From Octopus bimaculoides (lineage: Eukaryota): 64,000 nt of DNA. The stretch spans positions 57,363,210 to 57,427,209 of the forward strand of contig NC_068981.1 of the NCBI RefSeq assembly GCF_001194135.2. The letters are read 5' to 3'. A program made the position numbers and the translations under genes. Positions 3,253 through 25,700 of the stretch are shown here, one piece after another (position 1 is the first letter of the stretch; every line of letters starts with the position of its first letter). The notes beneath the pieces are model-generated. The model did not search any database. It saw only the letters and a program-made list of their open reading frames with translations, and had not been told where the DNA came from.

Positions 3253-4004
3253 TCAGATTTTTTTTTATTTGTGAAAGGTACGACGAAGGAAGGAGTGAGA
3301 ATTAAGAAATTCTTGTAAAAGAAAAGAAAAAAAAAAAGTGAATTACAAATGTTTCAGAATGTGGAATACAATAAAATGATGACAAACAGCGAAAAAAAAA
3401 AAATAATAATAATGATAATTACANNNNNNNNNNNNNNNNNNNNNNNNNNNNNNNNNNNNNNNNNNNNNNNNNNNNNNNNNNNNNNNNNNNNNNNNNNNNN
3501 NNNNNNNNNNNNNNNNNNNNNNNNNNNNNNNNNNNNNNNNNNNNNNNNNNNNNNNNNNNNNNNNNNNNNNNNNNNNNNNNNNNNNNNNNNNNNNNNNNNN
3601 NNNNNNNNNNNNNNNNNNNNNNNNNNNNNNNNNNNNNNNNNNNNNNNNNNNNNNNNNNNNNNNNNNNNNNNNNNNNNNNNNNNNNNNNNNNNNNNNNNNN
3701 NNNNNNNNNNNNNNNNNNNNNNNNNNNNNNNNNNNNNNNNNNNNNNNNNNNNNNNNNNNNNNNNNNNNNNNNNNNNNNNNNNNNNNNNNNNNNNNNNNNN
3801 NNNNNNNNNNNNNNNNNNNNNNNNNNNNNNNNNNNNNNNNNNNNNNNNNNNNNNNNNNNNNNNNNNNNNNNNNNNNNNNNNNNNNNNNNNNNNNNNNNNN
3901 NNNNNNNNNNNNNNNNNNNNNNNNNNNNNNNNNNNNNNNNNNNNNNNNNNNNNNNNNNNNNNNNNNNNNNNNNNNNNNNNNNNNNNNNNNNNNNNNNNNN
4001 NNNN

Positions 4005-5580: not shown

Positions 5581-6184
5581 AAGCAAATTTAAAATGAAAA
5601 AAGCAAATAAAACGAAGGTATGNNNNNNNNNNNNNNNNNNNNNNNNNNNNNNNNNNNNNNNNNNNNNNNNNNNNNNNNNNNNNNNNNNNNNNNNNNNNNN
5701 NNNNNNNNNNNNNNNNNNNNNNNNNNNNNNNNNNNNNNNNNNNNNNNNNNNNNNNNNNNNNNNNNNNNNNNNNNNNNNNNNNNNNNNNNNNNNNNNNNNN
5801 NNNNNNNNNNNNNNNNNNNNNNNNNNNNNNNNNNNNNNNNNNNNNNNNNNNNNNNNNNNNNNNNNNNNNNNNNNNNNNNNNNNNNNNNNNNNNNNNNNNN
5901 NNNNNNNNNNNNNNNNNNNNNNNNNNNNNNNNNNNNNNNNNNNNNNNNNNNNNNNNNNNNNNNNNNNNNNNNNNNNNNNNNNNNNNNNNNNNNNNNNNNN
6001 NNNNNNNNNNNNNNNNNNNNNNNNNNNNNNNNNNNNNNNNNNNNNNNNNNNNNNNTCATTCTTTATTTTGTTCTTTCTTTTTTCCCTATCCTTTCTCTCC
6101 CTCCCTCCCCCCTCTCTCTTTATGTATTTATATATATATATATATATAAGCAAGCTAGGAGAGTCGATTTACACAGAATATTAG

Positions 6185-12568: not shown

Positions 12569-12588
12569 TTATGTAGCCAAAAGTTCCT
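12569..12588 (-). CDS. IRF: IRF terminal coding exon 11 ((E)ELLAT*)
   Basis: Acceptor tttttgtattgttttacag|AG GAA CTT TTG GCT ACA TAA; phase 1 matches the previous exon; AATAAA follows. Confidence 0.7.
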
Positions 12589-15500
12589 CTGTAAAACAAT
12601 ACAAAAAGTTATATAGATATACAGCAAATATAAAAAAAGTGAATTAATTTTCACAGAATCATTACATTTAAAAGATGAGTGCGTCATCATCATCTAGCAT
12701 CCCTTGTCCATGCTGGCATGGGTTGGATGGTTTGACCAGGGCTGGCAAGCTGGAAGGTTGCACCAGACTCCAGTCTGATTTGGCATGGTTTCTACGATTG
12801 GATGCCCTTCCTAACACCAACCATTCCAAGAGTGTAATGGGTACTTTTACGTGCATAGGTGGTTGGGTTTTCTCCAGCATTATGTCACTCATTGTCAAAG
12901 TCTCTTATCATCTCTTTCAAAGCATTCAGTAACTTGGAACATGATGGAATCAGTTTCCACTATTTCATCTTATGTCTTTCTGGGATTCCCTCTACTGCAG
13001 GTTCTCTCCACTTCGAGCACTTAACTCTTTTCTATGCAGCTGTTATTCTCTATATGCATAACAGTCTTCTTTCTTGCACACTGATTGGATTCTTCTTATA
13101 TTCAGTTTTCTCTCAGTTATTTGTGATCTATTGTTCATACACACTGAAATAACATATCCAGCAGAGCATATTCACCTAATTTCTATCTTCACAAATCCTC
13201 TGCATTCAAAGTCAACATCGCTCTACCAAGCAGCATCAAAGTTTGTACACAAACATATTTCATGTTTATTATTGCTATTAATGATTCCTGTGCACCTATC
13301 ACAGCCTATATCTGATCCCACTACTATACTCTCTTCTCTGACAATCTGCTTATGATCCTACAGTGTAGATCTTAAGCATCCATACTTTACACTGATTTCA
13401 ATACATGGAATTTCTATCTTTGACTTTTCATCATATCAAGCATGACCAGTTCCCTGTTGGTAGCAGGGTCCTGTGTGTTTTCCTATGTACTATAAAACTT
13501 TAGTCTCTGTTAAGTCTACTTTAAGATTTTTCAGTTCTAGGTTTTGCTTCTAGATCTGGAATTTTATCTGTAAATCTCTTAGATTTACCAATAAAGTCAA
13601 ATCATCAGCATACAAGAGTTCACAGGGGCAACCAATCTTAAACTCTTTTGTTAGAGCCAGAGATTGAGTCCTAATGGATTCCTGCCTGCATGCAAAATCT
13701 GTCACTGAACTTTTAACTGACTCTCACTTTGCTGAATGTGCCTCTGTACATGAGTCGTATGGCGCCCACAAGCCATTCATCTACATCTAGTTTCCTAAGC
13801 AACCATCAGATTAGAAAGTAGCACCTTATTACATGCCTTTTCTAAGTTAGCAAATGTTGAAATGGTTTTGAAACATAATTATATTACCTTTAATTCTCAT
13901 AATTTCAGAACATTTTTTATCAACTGAGTCAGGTTCTGACATCTGTATTGAATTATGTGCCGTCAAATTCTGCATAAAAAATAAAAAGGAGGATATTGTG
14001 ATTAAACAATGGAAACAAAGAAAGCAATGAATTAACAGAAAATGTTGTAATAAACTAAATATTTCTGACAGTTTAATATTGTCATTCTGTGTTCTATAAT
14101 TAAATCCTGTGAAATTATTCCTTTACATTAAATAATTATTAGTATTGTAATGCTGGTGAGTCAATTAGTCAATTACGTATGCTTCTCTTTGTCAAACAAT
14201 GGTCGTGTACATGATCAAAAGAAATTGATATTTAGTAATCAGTCGAATCCTATAAGCAAGGCATACTGCTACATTTCTTTGAATGTGCCTAGATGAAAAT
14301 AACATAACAATATGTAAGCAAATGCACAAATTTGAAAAAGCATAAGAAATAGTAAGCTGCACTTAAAGTGGTTTGTTTTTATTTACGAGTTGTTTTTTAA
14401 CCCTTTTGTGACCATATTACTACTGAAATATACTACATTTGTTTCAATTAGTTTTATAATAATAATAATGACATTATTGCGTATAGTGCTCAGGTGCACT
14501 ACAACTGATCAAAGGTGCATGTACAATACATAGAATTATGTACAAAAGTTAGGAAAGTAAACAGTGTATGAGTCATGATATACATGTGTGCATCCATATG
14601 GAGTGGAAATATCAGGTGTAGTGTTCGTGAATTTCAGGAAGCATGGAGGTTTTAAAGGATGCAATGTCTCAGCAACTAACAACTGATGCAAGTAGTTTGT
14701 TCCATGCTTCAGCAACTCTGAGTGTGAAAAAATGTTTCTGAAAGTCATTAGAGCTGCGCTGTTTTCTGACTTTGTAGGCATGCCCACGTGTTAAACGCAT
14801 GGAGCTCAAAAAAATGTTCAAGTTGATATTTAATAATCAGTTGAATCCTGTAAGCAAGGCATACCACTATATTTTGAAAATAATGAAGAATTTGGTAAAA
14901 TAATTTTGTCATTATTAAGCTGGTGTTTGGAATATAAATTAATATGACATTTTGATAGAGGGTTTTAATTTAGATCACTTTAAAACAGAATTAACATTGT
15001 AGAACCAAGGGTATTCTTAGGTGGGTTGATCAAAAGGGTTCAAGGTTTTGTGATATTTGCAGCACTTCCAATAATTTTTTAAAGAGTCGCCAAAGTGTCA
15101 AATTTACAACACAAGTCCAAAACGAATTTTATTTTTAAACTAGCAGTATAACCCAGCTTTGCCAGGGATTAAGTTAGGATTATTAAGCTAATCAAGTTCT
15201 TTATTTCAAACCAAACTAAGTAACATCAACGTCAAATTTGGGCAGAATTAATGTCGCGACAGGAGCGCATGGGTTGGGAGTTTGAACGGCAAAGGTGATC
15301 AGGTTACACATGCCAGCCCTTTGAAAACACCACTCCCATCATCTAACCCTTCTTTGCCCATGGGTTGGGAACCCTTCCAGCAAGGAAAATAGAATGCCTA
15401 AAAGGGCTCCCGATTCTCTGTGTCAGAAGCAGATCACAATTAAGATCACAACTAAGTCTTAAGTATATGTATATATATATATATATATATAAGGGCAACA

Positions 15501-16473
15501 CACACATACACAGACGTACGTACACCAATTGCATACATGTTCGTATGTGTGTGTTGCCCATATATCAACAAAACACATTTTTCCTCGATGGAAAAAACAA
15601 CAACAAAAGTCTTAAAAACTTACTCGTCGCTAGAAGGGGACTTAACTCCTGTTCTAAACAATGGTGGTTTTCTCCAACTTGAAAATTGTTAAAAGTTTTG
15701 GTTGAAAATTTATTTTTACTGCTATTCGCTGGTGCCTCTGGGGAAAATAAGTTAGCGAAAATACAGCTAGGGTCATGACGAATGTCCTCCTAAAATTGGA
15801 GTGACATGCGTGCTAATTTGTGTACGTGCATAAATTACATTCACACACACACACGTCCTGCCTTTTATATACACAGATAACAAAATAACTTAGCTCCAGA
15901 AGGCAAAGAACACAGAACGCTAAAATATATAGACACAGTCAAACGCCCCTCCAAACACCCACCCACCACCACCACCACTTCCACCAATATTTTAGATTGA
16001 CGTCGGAGTTCTGATGTAAGGGAGACAACTTATTTCCTGTGATTAATATATTAAACACATGACTAAACTTCGAAAAACTGTTCCACGTCCGTTTTTAGCA
16101 TGGTAACATCTGTAAAATGAAGAAATGGTTACAACATTCTAAATTGAATGTATAAATAACTTACACATTGTTTAAGATATTCCTCTGCTAAATGACTTGT
16201 GACAGTGATGGATAATAATATACCATTCTGTAAATTTAAATCCGGGTAACAGCGTTGACCAACTGACATGAAAATATCGCACTGTGGAACAAACTTAGTT
16301 GTTCCGTTTAATCTTCCTGTTAAGAGTTCAGAGAAAATTGTGAAATCGAATATTTTCTCAGGTTTATTTCGTTCCAGATTCTTAGATTCTTGATTTTCCA
16401 TTTGACTAATATAAAAAACACGACACCTACAAATATTAAAAAGAAGTTATATAAAATCAATTTTAAAAGAGGA

Positions 16474-16510
<37 letters not shown>

Positions 16511-19500
16511 ATGCATCTATCTATATATACTATAATGGAGAAAGCTGCTTATTAATTAGGTGTGTAACAATTACTAAAAGTACTAAAAGCAATAATTAAA
16601 GGGTTGACCATCTGGAAATATTTTTATAAATTCATGTTTTAAGAAATTTCCTATAATTTCGATTTCTCAAGTTTATTGAATTTTTTTACTCCAATTTCTC
16701 ACGAATTTTAATATTCATTGCAATCACTGCATCCAATTCTTCACAAGTTTAAATATTTATTGCATTCACTGTGGAGTATTCCATTTCCCTTTGCCAAGTC
16801 TCTCACTTTCTCTTTTAAGTTTTAATTCGCTATTTGGAGAACTAGCAGTTTATTCTATTAATGTATACATAACATAAAAACATTATTTATTGAATGAAAA
16901 TTTTTTTAAATACCCGCATAATTTTTGAATGTGGGATAGCTGTGAGAAGGGGTAATTACTATTAGAAGACGAGGAGAGAAAAAGTCACCGACAAGTACTC
17001 AAAATTTGGTCCTTATTCAGTTTCCAAAAACTCTGTACCACTAAGCCAATATATACACAAACAAGTTGTACAAGCGACTTCAAAAGTCACACATACACAC
17101 ATAGATACGCATACACACAAATGAAAGGCAATGAATGTGTGTGTGTGCGTGTGTGCTGTTCACTGACAAAACATCGTGCTGCATCACTTTGTCGGTAGCA
17201 GGGTCCTGTGTGTTTTCCTACGTACTATAAAACTTTAGTCTCTGCTAAGTTTACTTTAAGGTTTTTCACTTCTAGGTTTTGCTTCTAGATCTGGAATTTT
17301 ATCTGTAAATCTCTTAGGTTTACCAATAAAACTAAATCATCAGCATACAAGAGTTCACAGGGGCAGCCAATTTTTAACTCTTCTGCTACAGCCTATAGGA
17401 CTTTGGCACAGAGAGCCAGAGACTGGGTTCTGGTGCACTCCTACATACATGCAAAATCTGTCACTGAACTTGTAACTGACTCTCTCTTTGCAGAATAAGC
17501 TTCTGTACAGGGGCTGTATGACCCTCAGAAACCATTCATTTACATCTAGTTTTTTTTAAGTAGCCACCAGATGCCTTTAACAAAGCTTGACATTTTAAAC
17601 TGTGCTCAGTCATGTGCAGTTCACTACTGAAAGAACACCATATAACTCATTGATGAGTATTTTATAAGTTTACTTTAAATTTATTGTTATGTTAAAATTG
17701 GCATTTTTAGTCTAGGAAAGGAGAGTCTTATATATCAATGAAAAAGATACAAGCTTTCACAAGTGCACAAATAAATACCTTTGTCACTTTTTTTCTTGAC
17801 AATGAAATTAATCACAAACAAGTGATCAGCGATTTTGTTGGATCTGTGTTCACAAATGCATGTAATAAAAAATAATTATTAAATACTGGTGAAATAACAG
17901 AACTGAATTTGTTTTTTATTCTTTATATATTATATTTCTTGCACTTGTTATTTTTATTATGTAATAGGATAGAAAGGCAGCAAGTTGGCAGAACCATTAA
18001 CATGCTAGGCATTTTGTCCGTCCTAACGTTCTAAGTTCAGATTTTGTCACGGTCAACTTAGCCTTTCAAAAAAGTAAGAGCCAATTGAGCTCTAGGGTCA
18101 ATGTAATTGACTTACCCTACCCTCGAAATTGCTGACCTTGTGCCAAAATTTGAAACCCTTATGTAATGGGACAGTAAGTAGAATACGGAGAGTGCCAGAC
18201 AAAAAAGCTTATAGTACTTAATCATGTCTCTTTAGATTCAAATCTTGCTGAGAGGTACTTTGCCTTTATCCCTCCATTGCTGATAAAATAAAGACCAGTG
18301 AAATACTGAAGTCAATTTAATAAACTGTGTCCTCTTCTAAAAGTTGTGGCCTTGTTTTGTCACAATGTTAGAAATTATTACTAATATTTTATATCATAGA
18401 AAGAAAAGCAAGAGACAGGAAGCAGAAATGAGTGGGTGTAATTTCTTAAAATAATTTTCATTCATTATCATTAAATGTAATGTTTAAAGAAAAAAAAATC
18501 AAGAGAAACACAAGAACAAGGAAAAATGAAAATGTATCAGAACAAGATATACATACTGGCAACTTCGTTCAGCAAAAATATTCATTCTATCATCAATATA
18601 GATGTGAATTCCCCGTGATAAGCCATCGATTAATTTTTTTCCAGATGGATGATGTGAAAGGTTATCTAACTGAAGGCAAAGAATGTTCTTTGATGTCAAC
18701 TTTAATGAGAAATGAAATGAAAAAAGAAAGACACAATTTAATTTAACAACAGTAAAAGTAGATAAGTATAAAATAATATAATCAGTATTTAGACAATGAA
18801 ACTTATACACACATAACAAAGAGCCTCTCTCTCAGAGTGAAAGGCAGGTTTGATGCCTGTTTGCAAACAGCTATGCTGCATGGCAGTGAAACATGGGCTA
18901 TAACAGCCGAGGACAAGCATAGGCTTGAGAGAAATGAAGCCAGTATGCTTTGCTGGATGTGCAATGTCAGTGTGCATGTTTGACAGTGTGTAAAATGTAA
19001 GCATCTTGAGAGAAAAGTTAGGTATAAGAGGAATCAGATGTGGTATGCAAGAGAGACAACTGCACGGGTATGGTCATGTGATGTGTGTGGACGAAGACAG
19101 TTGTGTAAAGAAGTGCTGATCTCTAACTGTGGAGGGTAGACCCAGGAAGACATGGGCTGAGGTGGTGAAGCATGACCTTTGAACCTCACGGAACCAATAA
19201 CTAGTGACTAAGACCTTTGGCATAGTGTCATGCTTGAGAAGACCCATCAAGCTGAGCAAAATCACAATGATGACAGATACTGGTGGCACATAAAAGCACC
19301 CATTACATTCTTGGAGGGGTTGGCTTTAGGAAGGGCATCCAGCCATAGAAAACCATGCCAAATCAGACTGGATCCTGGTGCAGCCTTCTAGCATGCCAGC
19401 CCAGTCAAACCGTCCAACCCATGGACATTGGATGTTTAATGATGATGATGATGATGATGATACATACACACACACATACATATATTACATTGGTGTAATG

Positions 19501-19786: not shown

Positions 19787-22700
19787 CACACACACATAAA
19801 TATATACAAATGCATATTTAGAATTAATTTAGCAAAGACCAAAGTCCTAGTAAGTAGGAAATCCAACAAATCACAAATTCCTTCAGAGAGATGGCCCTGC
19901 TTGATATGTAAAAAAGGTGTAGGTAGAAACTCTATAACGTGTACATGGTGCAAGCTATGGGCACATAAGAGGTGCAGTAGCTTCTATGTGTGGTACATGT
20001 GCAGGTTTAATAAACAATAGGAATGTATGGAAAATAGACTTCGTCAGATGCCTGGTGGGATTCTTAGAACTAGTAGAGAGCTTCTGTTACTAGGTGACCA
20101 AACCAGCAGTGGAGGAGGATGCTCTGAGAGTGTAGCTGCTGGAATAAGAATGGGCTGGTCAAGGTTCAGAGAGCTTCTACTTTTGTAAGTAACAAAGGGC
20201 TTCTCCCTCAGAGTGAAAGGCAGATTGTATGATGCCTGTGTGCAAACAGCCATGCTACATGGCAATGAAACATGGACTGTGAATGCGGAGGACAAAAGCT
20301 TGGAAGAACTAAAACTACCATGCTCTACTGAATGTGCAATGTCAGTGTGCATGTATGACAGAGTGTAAGTGTCCTAAAAGAAAAATTGGGTATAAGAGGC
20401 ATCAGATGTAGTGCACAAGAGAGAAGACTGTGCTGGTATGGTCGTGTGATGCATATGGATGAGAACAGCTGTGTAAAGAAGTGCCAATCTCTTAATTGTG
20501 GAGAGAGCCTGTGAAAGAAGTAGACCCAGAAAGACGTGGCACAAGGTGGTGAAATAATATTTTTAGGTTGTTGAGACTCACAAAAGTGTTAACAAGAGAC
20601 TGAGACTTCTGGCAATTTGCTGTGCTTGAGAAAGCATGTCAAGTTAAGTGAAGTCATGGTCGTGGCCAGTTCTGATGACACACAAAGGGCACCTATACCA
20701 GTGATACATAAAAGGTACCCAAGCTGACGACACATAAAAGGCACTCATACTGGTGGCATAAAAGGTACTTAGTACATTCTGTAAGGTAGTTGATGTTAGG
20801 AAGGGCATCTAGCTGTAGAAACCAAGCCAAAACAGATGACTGGAGCTCTTCTCAAACTGTCTAACTCATGCCAGCATGGAAAACAGACATCGGATTTAGG
20901 TTTATTAGATGATGATGATTAGATGGTAGTGGTGTTAGTGGTGGTGGTGTTGGTGGTGGTCATGATGATGCACTAGTGATTGTTAATAACACTTTCCTAC
21001 ATTATTTGAGAAACTATGTTAAAAAAAATATATCTGCAAAATAAGTGAGAAAAAGGCAACCAACTTACAGACCCATCCATACAACAGCCAGTTTTAATAA
21101 CACATGAAGTGAAATTTCTCTCTCGATACTCAATTTGTGAACCAACTTTCACAGTCACGGTGAAATCTATAAAGCATAAAATATTTTGATAGTACTTATG
21201 CAAACATAAATCATCATTAACAACAACATTCTTCAGTCTAGTAAATTTAGTCCATATTAGCCACTTTTAATCCAGATTTAACAACAGGTCATGTTGGGAT
21301 GGAAGCCAAAAGCATTTATAGTAGTGGCAAAAATAGTAGGGGAGAAACAGCATATCTCCAAGTATCTTTATAACATGTTGGTGTAGTATAGCATGTTTGA
21401 GACTACTAATTTGTTTTATGGCCTTTTTATATGTGGTCTAGTATGCTTGCACGTGTAACAGCAGCACCACACTTGATATATGAAAAGTACTCTCTTGTGA
21501 GGTTATACCTGAGCTTTGTCAGTAACAGATCAAAGCTGAAATACTTTCTCACTCTGAAGAGGAAGCCTAGTCTATTGAATAGTTCTGGTAATCTTACATG
21601 TACAATAAACAGCTGGTCTTTTTGATCTCTAAACCTTTGCTCAAAATTTCATCTATTACTCCTCAGCTTCCTCTAATGCTCCCTGCATTGAGCGATTTAT
21701 TTGCTTCATCAATAGATACCTGAAGATTGGATGGTTGATTTATTATCTAGGATAACAAAAAAGGGAGGCCTTTGAGAGTATGGAAATTGGAGGGATATGA
21801 TGCTGAGCAGCACGGTACCGAGTGTGTTTGGTTTGGTTCGGTTATACTGAATAAGATTTAAATTCCATTGGAAAGTAATATTAAAGGATGCAAAAGTAGT
21901 CTTCTAGTAATCATGTGGTTGAAGTGGGTAGACATTTTTTGCTTGGACATCTTATACATCAATGCATTGATTTCAGATAGAATTTGATAATGGCTTTCAT
22001 AGATTTTGAAAAGGTATTTCTCTCTCTCTCTTTTGTTTTTTTTTTATAGTATACATAGGATTACACATAATAAAGAAAACTAGTGGAAATAGAAAAGAAT
22101 AAACTGAACGGATTTATGGAAAGTATTTGGCAGATTCAGACTATGTTGAATAAAATAATGTAGCAGGTCTTCCAAAAATCAGTGTTATCAGATGAATGAA
22201 GCAATAATTTGTATTGTTTTAAATAACATACCAGTTAAGCAATTAAGTGATGGTTGCGGCGAAGATGTTTCCATTTCTTCTTCTTCCTCTTCCTTGATTT
22301 CCTCATTGAATTCTGGAAAATATAAAAGAAAATATTATTTTTGTTTTCCATCAAGTAACATTGATAATGGTTTCAAATTCTGGCACAAGGCCAGCAATTT
22401 TAAAAGAAGGAGTAACTTGGCATCATCAACCCCAGTGCTCAAATAGTACTTATTTTATTGACCCTGAAAGGCGTTTGAATAACACTGAACACAAAGCCAG
22501 AAGAAAGCCTCTAAGTATTTTGTTTGGTGTGGCAATGATTCTGCCCACTTTCCTCATTAAGTAATATTAATACTAAAATTACTTTAAAAGCAGGTTTTCT
22601 AAATTATGTTCTAACACCAGCATTTTCTACTGACTACAATACTTTTAACATTCTTTTACCTTCTATAAATAATTTTTGTATGTTATGCAAGAAAGGAATG

Positions 22701-25700
22701 TCTTTTCGAATGTCTTTTCACGTGCCAGGAAGGCGACGTTGGTAACGGTCACGCTCAAATGGTGCTATGTGGTTGATTACTCCAAATTAGCTCTGATTAA
22801 GTAAACCTATGATCAAAAACCATGATCGTCCCATCTACTATTCAGATATAGCATATCTAGGAATTACATTGTCCACTGTGTCCTGCAAGGCAGCTGAGTG
22901 TGATTTTGAGGGATACTTAAATGTTGTTTCTAGCAGGTCAAGCAACCATCTACATACTGTCTGGCTAGCTCACATTTGAATGTGTTGAATGAGATGGTAT
23001 GTCCAAGAATAAGGTGTAGTCATAGGAATTAATTACTCATCATCATCATTTATTGAGTACTTAATAGTAGATTTTTGTGAATGAATTTTCATTCCAACCT
23101 TTGATCCACAGATGTGTTGTTTCTTCACTCTGCCTCTTTTTTTCACTGATACTAATGTGGCCTTACTTCTTGCAATTGACCAGTCACAGGCTATAATAGG
23201 TTCCATATAAGCTCATCTGTCTCTCTTCCTTTTATCACTCATATCGAGTCAACTACATCCAAGATCCTACACTAACCATTATCACTATTCATTCTTTCCC
23301 AGAATGTCATCCATTTGGAATTCCTTCTCTACCCATATTTTCCTTGAAGTTGTTCAAGAACATTCACCAAGCTTAGAGGGCAAAGGTTGTATATGCAGGC
23401 TCTTCTTCCAAACCTAATCATTTAATCAAGAAAAAAAAAGTATTTAATTCATATTAAAGGAAAAACAAAAAAAAATAACTTACCAGTTAGCAAAGTTGGA
23501 ACACTGTAACTGCACGTATCATTCTGCAGATATAATATTTAGGCATTACTATCAATACAAGAATAATAAACTACAATAATAGAATTTACTTTTTTTCAGA
23601 ATATTTAACAGTATCAAATTCCACTTGCCATACAGTGTGATAAAATATTTTATGTATATATAGTTTCAGTAGTTTTATAGATGATTAAACATACAAAATA
23701 AATGTACACTCAAGTTTATAAAATAAGATATTAACATTCTGTTCAGTTCAGAAAAGGCCTTGAAAATACAATACTATACTTTAATGGTGAATCTGACTGT
23801 TCTATAACTAGTCAATCATAAATGATGCATTTTTAACAAATGAATAGTTATAATTAAATGTAAAAATATGAATTAGTTTTACAATTTAATGAAAATATAC
23901 AATAATAATATTTTATGATAATGCTCAGGCATAATGATACTAAAAGCCAGTTATTAGAATCTATATATACTTACACACACATTTTGCTGTATATATGTAC
24001 AGAATGGTAACAACCATAATCGGGATGGCACCTGTGCCCAGCGTCGCCTTTCTGGCACTTGTGCCCGCAGCATGTGTAAGGACTTTCGAGCGAGATCGTT
24101 GCCAGTGCCCCTGGACTGGCTCTTGTGTGGGTGGCACATAAAATACACCATTTTGAGCGTGGCCATTGCCTGTATCGCCTGACTGGCCTTCGTGCGGGTG
24201 ACATGTAGAAGCACCTACTACACTCTCGGAGTGGTTGGCATTAGGAAGGGCATCCAGCTGTAGAAACTCTGCCAAATCAGATTGAAGCCTGGTGTAGCCT
24301 TCGGGTTCCACCAGTCCTCAGTCAAATCGTCCAACCCATGCTAGCATGGAAAGCGGACGTTAAACGATGATGATGATGATGATACAGTTTTTGGGAGTAT
24401 TTTTATCTTTGCTCAAGTGTAAAATTATGGTCAATGTGAAATAAGGAAGCATGTACATGAAGCTTTAAAGGTGTTGTTAAATGCCTCTGCAAGATACAGG
24501 GATTCATAAAACCAATTCTTGGCTTTAAAATTTATAATGTGATGCAGATAGAAGGTACATTTTCTTTTGTATATAACGCCAACCAATCTTGGGTAACGTT
24601 TCCAAAATATCTGGTGCTTCTACCCAACAAATTAGGTGATTTCAGATAAGTAAAACTGACTGCACTACCCCCACTCCACACTACACCACAAAAAAATTCC
24701 TACTGTAAATATAAATTTACTTGTCTAATATCTTGTCCTCTGATCCAACTTAAGTCTATTAAAAATAACAATACTTAGGAAAAAAAGTATCCACACCTAT
24801 ATCATGAGTAGTAAATAGTAACGAAAGCATCTAGCTGGCTGCAAAAATTCATTATTCCAACAAAACCAGAAGAATGTTCCCTTCTAACTGTAGTTGAGTA
24901 CAGGTAAGTTACAGGTGAAAAGAAGGTCTGGACATTAATGCTTAGTGTTTATTTTAGTATCTTACAAACCAACAAAGTGACCAAACGAAATCAGAAAATA
25001 GATATTTAATAACTAATTTGATATCATATATTTCTGAATTCCAATCCCACTAAGATAGATTTTACATTTTTATCTCTTTGGAATTGGTATATACAAATAA
25101 AATATTGTATTAAAGTGAAATGTCTTCGTTAAATAATGAATTATATTTTGCAAGTCAGTGTCACATATGAAGTAAACAAAAATAATATTTGATTTTATAT
25201 ACAAGAAAGATTATCAAAACATTTGAAGAACTCACATTATCGAAATTCATATCCTGAGAATATCCTTGTGGCTGTGTATAGGGTTTATAATCTACAAAAA
25301 TTGAAAAACATAAACAAGTAAATAAAAGCACATACATTTCCATTTAAATAATCATATAAATGAAAGTAAAGTGAATAACAATGTTATTTTTGTAAGAGGA
25401 GAGAGCATATATAATTTAATATGATAATTATTTTACCAAAACAGGGAATTGGAATGAAAGAAACAACTATATATGGATTGAATAAGGATACTCAGAATAA
25501 TTATGTCAACAATTATATGTGATATATCATAGTTAATGAATTAACTAGCTCTATTAACCATTTACCTTTACATCTTACACCCTCCTAACAATGTTGGGAC
25601 ACAAACAAAAAACACATACACACACCACACACACAACAGGCTTCTACACAGCTTCCATCTACCAAATTAATTCACAAGGCATTAGTTGGCCCAGGGCTAT

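Follow-up and report, generated by a model that had tools for sequence, protein, structure and literature searches.

Conserved C-terminal serine motif and terminal helix in an IAD-type interferon regulatory factor of Octopus bimaculoides, a candidate phospho-switch

The window analysed is a stretch of 64,000 nucleotides from Octopus bimaculoides (contig NC_068981.1). It carries on the minus strand the gene for P0001, a 371-aa protein that NCBI names "interferon regulatory factor 1". When the gene was rebuilt, 10 coding exons were obtained, the spliced CDS translated to P0001 letter for letter, and 9/9 introns were GT-AG. Coding exon 9 encodes a connector and most of a C-terminal helix, and is bounded by the AG acceptor ttttttatgcag and the GT donor gtaatata. 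The motif SIQMSEPD was found in this exon where the first-pass annotation had placed it: the reverse complement codes for S345-D352, and the numbering of S349 fits the 371-aa protein. The exon had been called exon 10, a count that would require an untranslated first exon; among the coding exons it is the ninth of ten. Because no encoding-contig record was found for P0001, splicing rests on the canonical sites and on conservation in orthologues.

Features of the octopus IRF gene and its C-terminal motif, in positions of the window.
Feature	Position	Strand	Detail
Coding exon 1	28968..29132	-	M1-K55, IRF DNA-binding domain first half; PF00605 exon match 47.5 bits
Coding exon 2	25842..26010	-	D56-K111, IRF DNA-binding domain second half; PF00605 exon match 39.2 bits
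Coding exon 3	25236..25291	-	linker
Coding exon 4	23484..23523	-	linker, NDTCSYSVPTLLT
Coding exon 5	22232..22312	-	acidic linker, EFNEEIKEEEEEEMETSS...
Coding exon 6	21069..21166	-	D171-S203, IAD beta-sandwich start; AlphaFold2 strands 172-196
Coding exon 7	18557..18699	-	L204-Q251; contains R248 (18567-18565) and ERSCQ of ERSCQCRVFY
Coding exon 8	16165..16426	-	C252-C338, IAD core; PF10401 exon match 35.7 bits
Coding exon 8 basic residues	R253 16422-16420, R270 16371-16369, K272 16365-16363	-	
Coding exon 9	13888..13969	-	82 nt, phase 0 start; N339-K365 and first base of E366
Coding exon 10	12569..12588	-	last 2 bases of E366, ELLAT, stop TAA; C-terminal helix end
SIQMSEPD, S345-D352	13928..13951	-	codons TCA ATA CAG ATG TCA GAA CCT GAC
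S349, candidate phospho-acceptor	13939-13937	-	conserved Ser column
Extended motif Phi-x-Phi-S-x-P-D-x-x-D, S345-D355	13919..13951	-	D355 matches last Asp of IRF5 NPDLKD
Predicted C-terminal helix ("helix 5" equivalent)	13888..13927 (residues 353-365), continuing 12588-12575 to 370	-	AlphaFold2 DSSP

Pfam places an IRF DNA-binding domain at residues 7-110 (PF00605, 95.9 bits). Its five spaced tryptophans (W11, W26, W38, W57 and W75) do not vary among octopods, and its PDB matches are the DNA-binding domains of IRF2/3/4, with E down to 1e-18. The IAD follows at residues 224-337 (PF10401, IRF-3, 54.7 bits), and the protein also gives a weak Pfam match to MH2. The AlphaFold2 model has pLDDT >90 in the IAD and <50 at linker residues 121-163 and connector residues 345-347. 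The predicted terminal helix at 353-370 is amphipathic and scores 91, 93 and 85 in 10-residue blocks. Among PDB structures, Foldseek placed the dimeric IRF5 transactivation domain first (E 3e-13), ahead of the IADs of IRF4, IRF9 and IRF3 and of SMAD MH2 domains (Smad1/2/3).

Members of the IRF1/IRF2 subfamily do not have IAD1 and carry IAD2. Membership in that subfamily was ruled out by the clear IAD1 of P0001 in Pfam and Foldseek, and the NCBI name is therefore a misnomer; IAD-type (IRF4/5/8-like) would be a better one. A genome search with the octopus IAD protein returned itself as the sole match, so that this gene is the only detectable IAD-type (IRF3-9-group) IRF of O. bimaculoides. It is co-orthologous to the IRF3-9 group as a whole and not to IRF5 in particular. 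The motif was considered as a marker of an IRF5 orthologue, a reading rejected because the motif is common to the entire IAD-type family.

The motif begins eight residues past the end of the IAD match, and since that match stops at residue 337, the earlier description of the site as directly after the IAD holds. A six-frame scan of the window (127,996 codons) for the pattern [LIVM]Q[LIVM]S.PD found it at this site and nowhere else. HMMER aligned octopus SIQMSEPDSVDKK with IRF5 RLQISNPDLKDRM, and a phmmer search with the C-terminal 201 aa matched IRF5 3DSH at E 2.6e-5, with siqmsepdsvdkk set against RLQISNPDLKDRM. Because SIQMS-EPD-SVD is thereby aligned with RLQIS-NPD-LKD, S349 matches IRF5 S462, the IKKbeta site. 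A family profile of 42 sequences recovered IRF5 at 1e-58 and IRF3 at about 1e-19 to 1e-20, and in its alignment the serine column falls on RLQIS of IRF5 and DLHIS of mouse IRF3. By these alignments S349 is homologous in position to IRF5 S462 and to the LHIS serine of IRF3, as had been proposed, and the homology is solid. The label pLxIS-like needs qualification. The strict pLxIS consensus is hydrophilic-L-x-I-S, from which S-I-Q-M-S departs by having Ile in place of Leu and Met in place of Ile; the looser pattern Phi-x-Phi-S of 62 family relatives does cover it. Two further serines, S345 and S353, flank S349 at four residues to each side. The stretch S349-E-P-D is also compatible with a CK2-type acidophilic S-x-x-D/E site and with a helix N-cap box.

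Conservation was assessed in 62 non-octopod IAD-type IRF representatives from molluscs (gastropods, one bivalve and one chiton), an annelid, a nemertean, amphioxus, Hydra and vertebrates; a word-based search for homologues, run with an alignment of 30 sequences, gave only 7 proteins and contributed little. The first-pass annotation had proposed aligning mollusc IAD-type C-termini, and the motif was indeed kept in octopod orthologues (SIQMSEPDSVD in O. sinensis, SIQMSNEDSID in Argonauta), with S345, I346, Q347, M348, S349, D352, S353 and D355 invariant in the three octopods. Among the 62 relatives, the S349 column is Ser in 50 and Thr in 4, the D355 column is Asp in 43, the D352 column is D in 27 and N in 11, and the I346 and M348 columns are hydrophobic. 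Conservation of the serine, both flanking hydrophobics and both Asp extends from Hydra, where the counterpart reads EIQASEPNSND, to vertebrates. P0009 and P0180, the closest relatives outside the octopods, end directly after VSIS/VSLS, without acidic box or helix. Both occur only in RNA-seq assemblies (SRR8281663 and others) and, with <=49% identity to the DBD exons of the octopus genome, do not come from it.

IRF8-like vertebrate proteins retain the motif as NLEIS or NLQIS, and IRF4 keeps a remnant, PEHINSPEDY in Mustela. IRF8-like and IRF4 proteins are not known to be switched on via this tail motif. Its presence in them means that it is not diagnostic of a phospho-switch. The motif is, on the aligned sequences, ancestral to all IAD-type IRFs, and by itself it is therefore no sign of the "IRF3/5/6/7 mode" to which the octopus factor had been assigned; it reaches Hydra, amphioxus and the IRF8-like vertebrate proteins alike.

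The basic segment ERSCQCRVFY is present as described, at E247-Y256, split over coding exons 7 and 8. In IRF3, R285 contacts phosphoserine, and the basic patches are R285/H288/H290, K313/K315, R211/R213, K360/R361 and R255/R262/H263 (PMC10350828). R248 is the equivalent of R285, aligned to the Arg of IRF3 AQRLGH and of IRF5 AIRLCQ, and its column is Arg in 62/62 relatives. H290 corresponds to the basic R253, and H288 to Q251. In the profile alignment (mouse IRF3 row), K313/K315 correspond to R270/K272, also basic, with Arg at the R270 column in 60/62 relatives. The counterparts of R211/R213 (V178/S180, mapped by eye) and of K360/R361 (G318/I319, from the profile alignment) are not basic. The idea that the IAD keeps the phosphate-binding surface thus survives for its core arginine, R248, and in part beyond it: of the five IRF3 patches, four of which were mapped, two are kept.

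We consider it probable, on the sequence comparisons, that the SIQMSEPD site is a conserved C-terminal regulatory element, composed of a flexible connector and a terminal helix, of a latent, phospho-switched octopus IRF. A phospho-switch at S349 itself is plausible. In the resting protein, the terminal helix would be packed on the IAD and the factor would be monomeric and inactive. An IKK-family kinase would phosphorylate S349, perhaps together with S345 and S353. The tail would then be released, and phospho-S349 with I346/M348 may dock on R248, R253, R270 and K272 of a second IAD. The resulting dimer would gather in the nucleus and bind ISRE-like sites. The element is closest in form to that of IRF5/6 and not IRF3, because the tail is short and without the GASSL block of IRF3/7.

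The motif could instead be purely structural, with Ser and Asp forming a helix N-cap or capping box, the hydrophobics anchoring the helix on the IAD, and no signal-dependent phosphorylation. Its conservation would then reflect a need to fold or to bind partners constitutively, as IRF4/8/9-type factors do. IRF4/IRF8-like factors are known to act via partners rather than by phospho-dimerisation, and IRF8-like proteins still carry the motif, IRF4 a part of it. IRF4 and IRF8 are mainly nuclear (PMC11841930). The arrangement S-x-x-D / D-x-x-D directly before a helix that AlphaFold2 predicts with confidence is what capping would look like, and a lone octopus IAD-type IRF must cover all ancestral roles. 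Against this, the residue is a regulatory phosphosite in every vertebrate paralogue studied, namely IRF5 S462 (PMC7228753) and S396, the site-2 serine of IRF3 (PMC11486635). The serine column is also conserved far above its neighbours, the phosphate-contacting Arg is invariant, and the connector is predicted to be flexible, as a kinase substrate would be. We regard a structural role without a switch as unlikely.

A switch at S349 raises the matter of its kinase. The O. bimaculoides genome has, by exon matches, a TBK1/IKKepsilon-like kinase gene: a TBK1_ULD exon at C1:5527162-5527350 scored 57.2 bits against a cut-off of 31, a second exon lies at 5528150, and an activation-loop exon at C1:5545631-5545783, upstream of the TBK1_ULD exon, has the activation-loop Ser conserved. 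An exon-level Pfam search of the genome, which does not show absence, gave no exon match to STING_LBD at E<=1 and none to TBK1_CCD1 or IKBKB_SDD. With no STING exon found, IRF3-type adaptor docking is without support. The octopus setting is a single small IAD-type IRF and a TBK1-like kinase, possibly with no STING.

S349 might instead be phosphorylated outside the antiviral TBK1/IKK axis, by a constitutive CK2-type or a developmental kinase (as RIPK4 acts on IRF6), which would put the octopus factor in differentiation or housekeeping rather than latent immune signalling. The CK2 consensus is S-x-x-[DE], and nearly every form of the motif has Asp/Glu at +3, as in the D352 column and in IRF5 NPD; the exon-level search that found no STING exon points the same way. 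IRF6 is activated by RIPK4, and not by TBK1/IKK, via its C-terminal S413/S424 (PMC11486635). The TBK1/IKKepsilon-like gene with its conserved activation-loop Ser speaks against such a kinase, as do the responses of shrimp and oyster IAD-type IRFs to the STING/IKKepsilon/TBK1 axis (10.1101/2022.12.18.520954; PMC8218723) and the phosphorylation of the S-N-P-D context of IRF5 by IKKbeta (PMC7228753). We therefore hold a kinase from outside this axis to be quite improbable. That the resemblance is due to chance or to a mis-predicted exon, as the missing encoding-contig record for P0001 might suggest, is effectively refuted by the canonical splice sites and continuous frame, by the exon peptide kept in two other octopod genomes, by the motif recurring across phyla and by the uniqueness of the pattern in the window.

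A switch made of connector serine and terminal helix may be the device by which IAD-type IRFs were all activated ancestrally, predating the cnidarian-bilaterian split. The octopus would then offer a natural system reduced to the minimum, with the whole IRF3-9-type output controlled by phosphorylation of one serine, S349, by an IKK-family kinase; we put this forward tentatively, as a serious possibility. A 2025 paper presents the IRF5 serine-rich region and cytoplasmic latency as a jawed-vertebrate innovation (PMC11841930). Ser in 50/62 and Arg in 62/62 relatives across phyla qualify that claim of origin for the serine-rich region and latency. If the S349 switch works, activation of the IRF5/IRF3 type long predates vertebrate interferons, and a cephalopod with only one such factor has it too, which would offer a simple handle on cephalopod antiviral signalling. 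Cephalopod innate immunity is poorly known.

Kinase-driven dimerisation of invertebrate IRFs has already been published, for shrimp and oyster. The octopus tail is a sound but fairly ordinary counterpart of the old serine-bearing tail by which IRF3-9-type factors are switched on in vertebrates. In shrimp, IRF dimerisation and nuclear entry depend on IKKepsilon/STING (10.1101/2022.12.18.520954; PMC12928593), and nuclear entry of oyster CgIRF8 depends on STING/cGAS (PMC8218723); the novelty once attached to finding such a factor in an invertebrate falls away. Shrimp LvIRF and oyster CgIRF8 are protostome IAD-type IRFs of the same class as the octopus protein, with stimulus- and STING/IKKepsilon/TBK1-dependent dimerisation and/or nuclear translocation shown by experiment (10.1101/2022.12.18.520954; PMC12928593; PMC8218723), whereas the octopus IRF is known here from sequence and predicted structure. 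In the texts consulted, the acceptor serine is mapped in neither protein (10.1101/2022.12.18.520954; PMC12928593; PMC8218723).

The closest known system is vertebrate IRF5, with IRF6 beside it; IRF5 is the best match of the octopus protein both in sequence (phmmer) and in fold (Foldseek). In IRF5, phosphorylation of S462 by IKKbeta leads to dimerisation and nuclear entry, and the connector spans 455-464 and helix 5 spans 465-478 (PMC7228753). The two proteins have in common Phi-x-Phi-S-x-P-D-x-x-D followed by an amphipathic helix, and a short IAD link with no GASSL block. The Arg of IRF5 AIRLCQCKVFW equals R248 of octopus AERSCQCRVFY, and the Arg of PIQRE equals R270 of NLERN. In contrast to IRF5, the octopus connector lacks two residues (SIQMS, where IRF5 has SIRLQIS), Glu and not Asn or Thr comes after the acceptor, and the protein is much smaller, ending six residues past the helix exon, with no NES identified in it. 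IRF3/IRF7 have the pLxIS motif (DLHIS) and are activated by TBK1/IKKepsilon through the adaptors STING, MAVS and TRIF. With them the octopus factor shares the aligned LHIS serine, R248 for R285, R270/K272 for K313/K315, the IAD/MH2 fold and a TBK1-like kinase. It differs from IRF3/IRF7 in having no GASSL/S386-type site 1, in Q251 for H288, in a pLxIS that is not strict, in R211/R213 and K360/R361 patches that are not basic, and in that the exon-level search found no STING exon. SMAD MH2 domains belong to the same fold superfamily as the octopus IAD, as the weak Pfam MH2 match and the Foldseek matches to Smad1/2/3 indicate. Their logic is also the one proposed for the octopus tail: the C-terminal SSxS phospho-tail of a SMAD docks on the basic pocket of the neighbouring subunit. 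SMADs differ in being another family, phosphorylated by receptor Ser/Thr kinases and assembled in another oligomer geometry.

The annotated 371-residue octopus IRF (P0001), retrieved by a word-based search of proteins using a draft assembled by hand, was mapped back to the window and its exon junctions refined. The gene comprised ten coding exons with GT...AG at all nine introns, and translation of the spliced coding sequence matched P0001 exactly. Reverse-complement translation confirmed the motif, S345-I-Q-M-S-E-P-D352, to the base. The first-pass annotation had assigned it to exon 10; it lies in coding exon 9, and the number 10 fits only given an untranslated first exon. Word-based search also recovered two orthologues, P0002 of O. 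sinensis and P0003 of Argonauta hians.

Pfam identified an IRF DNA-binding domain (residues 7-110, 95.9 bits), an IRF-3/IAD domain (residues 224-337, 54.7 bits) and a below-threshold MH2 match in P0001, which is therefore an IAD1-type IRF. IAD1 is absent from IRF1/2, and the NCBI name 'interferon regulatory factor 1' is thus a misnomer. Both orthologues carry the same name. PF00605 detected three IRF loci in the genome (C1, C10 and C25), PF10401 gave one significant exon genome-wide, that of the window gene, and the octopus IAD protein matched only its own three exons. Within exon-by-exon search sensitivity, O. bimaculoides seems to have no IAD-type IRF other than the window gene. No Pfam IAD exon was matched near the C10 or C25 loci, which are therefore probably IRF1/2-like.

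Residues S345, I346, Q347, M348, S349, D352, S353 and D355 were unchanged across the three octopods, among which overall identity fell to 50%. Searched exhaustively with HMMER, 1.84 billion representatives yielded 875 matches to the octopod profile. From the best 150, 62 non-octopod sequences with an IAD of at least 24 bits and fewer than 800 residues were aligned over IAD and tail. The search profile included the motif, but it was the DNA-binding domain that dominated the ranking; in this set the S349 column held Ser in 50 of 62 and Thr in 4, D355 was Asp in 43, and D352 was Asp in 27 and Asn in 11. The M348 column was Ile (23), Leu (11) or Val (8), and I346 was Leu (23) or Ile (12). This count is stronger evidence than the invariant S349 of two hand-picked alignments of IRF relatives (A2, A3). 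Members included gastropods (Gigantopelta, Patella, Bulinus, Batillaria, Littorina, Physella, Elysia, Haliotis), bivalves (Sinanodonta, Pecten, Argopecten), a chiton, a nemertean, the annelid Owenia, amphioxus, Hydra vulgaris (EIQASEPNSND) and vertebrate IRF5, fish IRF3/7-like and IRF8-like proteins. These cross-phylum counts and members argue that Phi-x-Phi-S-x-[PS]-[DN]-x-x-D (Phi, hydrophobic) with its helix is ancestral to IAD-type IRFs and no IRF3/5/6/7 peculiarity. The IRF3/5/6/7 mode earlier read from the motif does not follow, since a motif common to IAD-type IRFs does not discriminate their sub-modes.

The nearest non-octopod relatives, P0009 and P0180, are mRNAs from RNA-seq assemblies (SRR8281663 and others). 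They share with the octopus IRF an unusual WKRN and YPYWK/YPVWK in the DNA-binding domain. Their products end directly after ...KVHKVSISI or ...HHVSLSVGSNS, keeping Phi-S-Phi-S without the acidic box or terminal helix.

Searching residues 171-371 against PDB sequences with phmmer matched IRF5 (3DSH) at E 2.6e-5, pairing octopus ...ahn.siqmsepdsvdkkcse with ...ADDiRLQISNPDLKDRMVEQ. A profile of 42 IAD-plus-tail fragments matched IRF5 at 1e-58 and IRF4 at ~5e-39; for IRF9 and IRF3 the values were ~1e-19 to 1e-20. The Ser column of this profile fell on RLQIS of IRF5 and DLHIS of mouse IRF3, so that the proposed homology to vertebrate serine sites is well supported. In IRF5, Ser462 lies within a connector (455-464) preceding helix 5 (465-478), and its phosphorylation by IKKbeta leads to dimerisation and nuclear translocation (PMC7228753); we infer a shift of 26 between that paper's numbering and the one used for the crystal construct (S430D, residues 222-467). 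Alignments and numbering together indicate S349 as the counterpart of S462. Likewise, I346 and M348 align as the two hydrophobic residues of RLQIS, and D352 and D355 as the two Asp of NPDLKD.

AlphaFold2, run on a 30-sequence alignment, gave a mean pLDDT of 81, mostly >90 in both domains and <50 in the acidic linker (121-163). Residues 345-347 fell below 50 (341-350 block average 56), and a helix at 353-370 reached ~90. The top Foldseek match was the dimeric IRF5 transactivation domain (E 3e-13), with the IADs of IRF4, IRF9 and IRF3 and the MH2 domains of SMADs ranked next. The model thus predicts the IRF5 layout, a serine on a flexible connector followed by a stable terminal helix, whose packing may be autoinhibitory. 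T341, S345, S349 and S353, all candidate acceptors, are spaced exactly four residues apart, and S345-I-Q-M-S349 (Argonauta D-S-I-Q-M-S) resembles the IKK substrate spacing D-S-Phi-x-x-S. The linker, predicted disordered over 131-170, contains an acidic run, EEIKEEEEEEME, possibly an activation region, and a VPTLL element that is conserved, with Pro139 unchanged in all 30 sequences of A3.

IRF3 has five basic patches, and R285 contacts the pLxIS phosphoserine (PMC10350828). Residues were mapped through the phmmer (IRF5) and 42-fragment alignments. R285 corresponded to octopus R248 (Arg in 62/62 non-octopod relatives), H290 to R253 and K313/K315 to R270/K272 (R270 column Arg in 60/62); H288 corresponded to Q251, K360/R361 to G318/I319 and, by eye only, R211/R213 to V178/S180. 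The alignments suggest that the core of the phosphate pocket is kept and its periphery is not; ERSCQCRVFY was thus correctly described as a basic segment corresponding to the phosphate-binding surface.

These comparisons make a kinase switch a reasonable reading of the octopus IRF. We somewhat favour S349 as a regulatory acceptor: an IKK-family kinase would phosphorylate it, freeing the tail, which would then engage R248/R253/R270/K272 on a second IAD to form an active dimer. A purely structural motif, capping and anchoring the tail, is unlikely here and may hold for IRF4/8-like proteins, which keep the motif. Slightly less likely still is an acidophilic or developmental kinase outside the antiviral axis; S-E-P-D fits S-x-x-[DE], and IRF6 is activated via S413/S424 by RIPK4 (PMC11486635, review). 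A chance resemblance or false exon is extremely improbable; strict [LIVM]Q[LIVM]S.PD occurred once in six-frame translation of the whole window.

An exon-level genome search found a TBK1_ULD exon (57.2 bits) and a second ULD exon ~0.8 kb upstream. Another ~18 kb upstream, an exon on that strand encodes what we take, from the human sequence, to be the TBK1/IKKepsilon activation-loop signature including its Ser. This gene lies ~52 Mb from the IRF gene on the same chromosome, and about a quarter of 40 kb at the locus is N. STING_LBD, TBK1_CCD1 and IKBKB_SDD gave no exon-level genome match, negatives that do not show absence.

Two near-identical reverse-transcriptase fragments, KIGCPCELLYADDL[TV]LLVNLRDLQIKFQI, appear to be copies belonging to a single retroelement family. 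Upstream of the IRF gene, four transposable-element frames were recognised by visual inspection only. An open frame encoding ankyrin repeats (…GNLAVIDELLQRGAKVNFASTDGCTALHVATEAKHEDIVKRLIDAGAS…) probably represents one exon of an adjacent gene. The N runs, either assembly gaps or withheld sequence, often had simple repeats of the (TA)n or (CA)n type at their borders.

Coordinates of features (window positions unless a contig is named; window, C1:57363210-57427209; G000, O. bimaculoides genome)
Feature	Position	Strand	Detail
IRF gene, coding exons	29132 to 12569	-	P0001
Acidic linker run region	22232-23523	-	residues 131-170
Coding exon 9	13969-13888	-	82 nt; motif exon
Candidate acceptor segment	13889-13963	-	residues 341-365
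SIQMSEPD	13928-13951	-	S345-D352
Last coding exon		-	20 nt, follows exon 9; ELLAT + stop
Reverse-transcriptase fragment	13553-13723	-	last intron
Reverse-transcriptase fragment	17288-17392	-	intron 7
Ankyrin open frame	1754-2287	+
Possibly retroelement-derived ORF	30416-30862	+
RT fragment	31629-32090	+	YLDD motif
Tc1/mariner-like transposase fragment	44477-44926	-
LINE-type RT fragment	48729-49053	+
N runs	3424-4004, 5623-6055, 35393-35620, 48020-48728, 51736-52214		total 2,460 bases
TBK1/IKKepsilon-like gene	G000:C1:5527162-5545783	-	ULD and activation-loop exons
TBK1_ULD exon	C1:5527162-5527350	-
Second ULD exon	C1:5528150-5528227	-
Additional IRF DNA-binding-domain locus	G000:C10:54169867-54186869
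Additional IRF DNA-binding-domain locus	G000:C25:1707143-1708729
P0009	L009:2085-3182

The heterobranch Aplysia reportedly lacks STING and MAVS yet retains five IAD-type IRFs as well as non-canonical IKKs (PMC9334734). In response to DNA or virus, shrimp IRF is described as dimerising and moving to the nucleus in dependence on STING and IKKepsilon (10.1101/2022.12.18.520954; PMC12928593), and nuclear entry of oyster CgIRF8 as depending on cGAS/STING (PMC8218723); in the available portions of these accounts we found no mapping of the acceptor serine. Such IRF activation is thus already on record for invertebrates other than octopus. A 2025 paper regarded cytoplasmic latency and the serine-rich region of IRF5 as jawed-vertebrate innovations (PMC11841930). 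Conservation of the motif among IAD-type IRFs points to an origin long before jawed vertebrates for at least the core of the serine-rich region.
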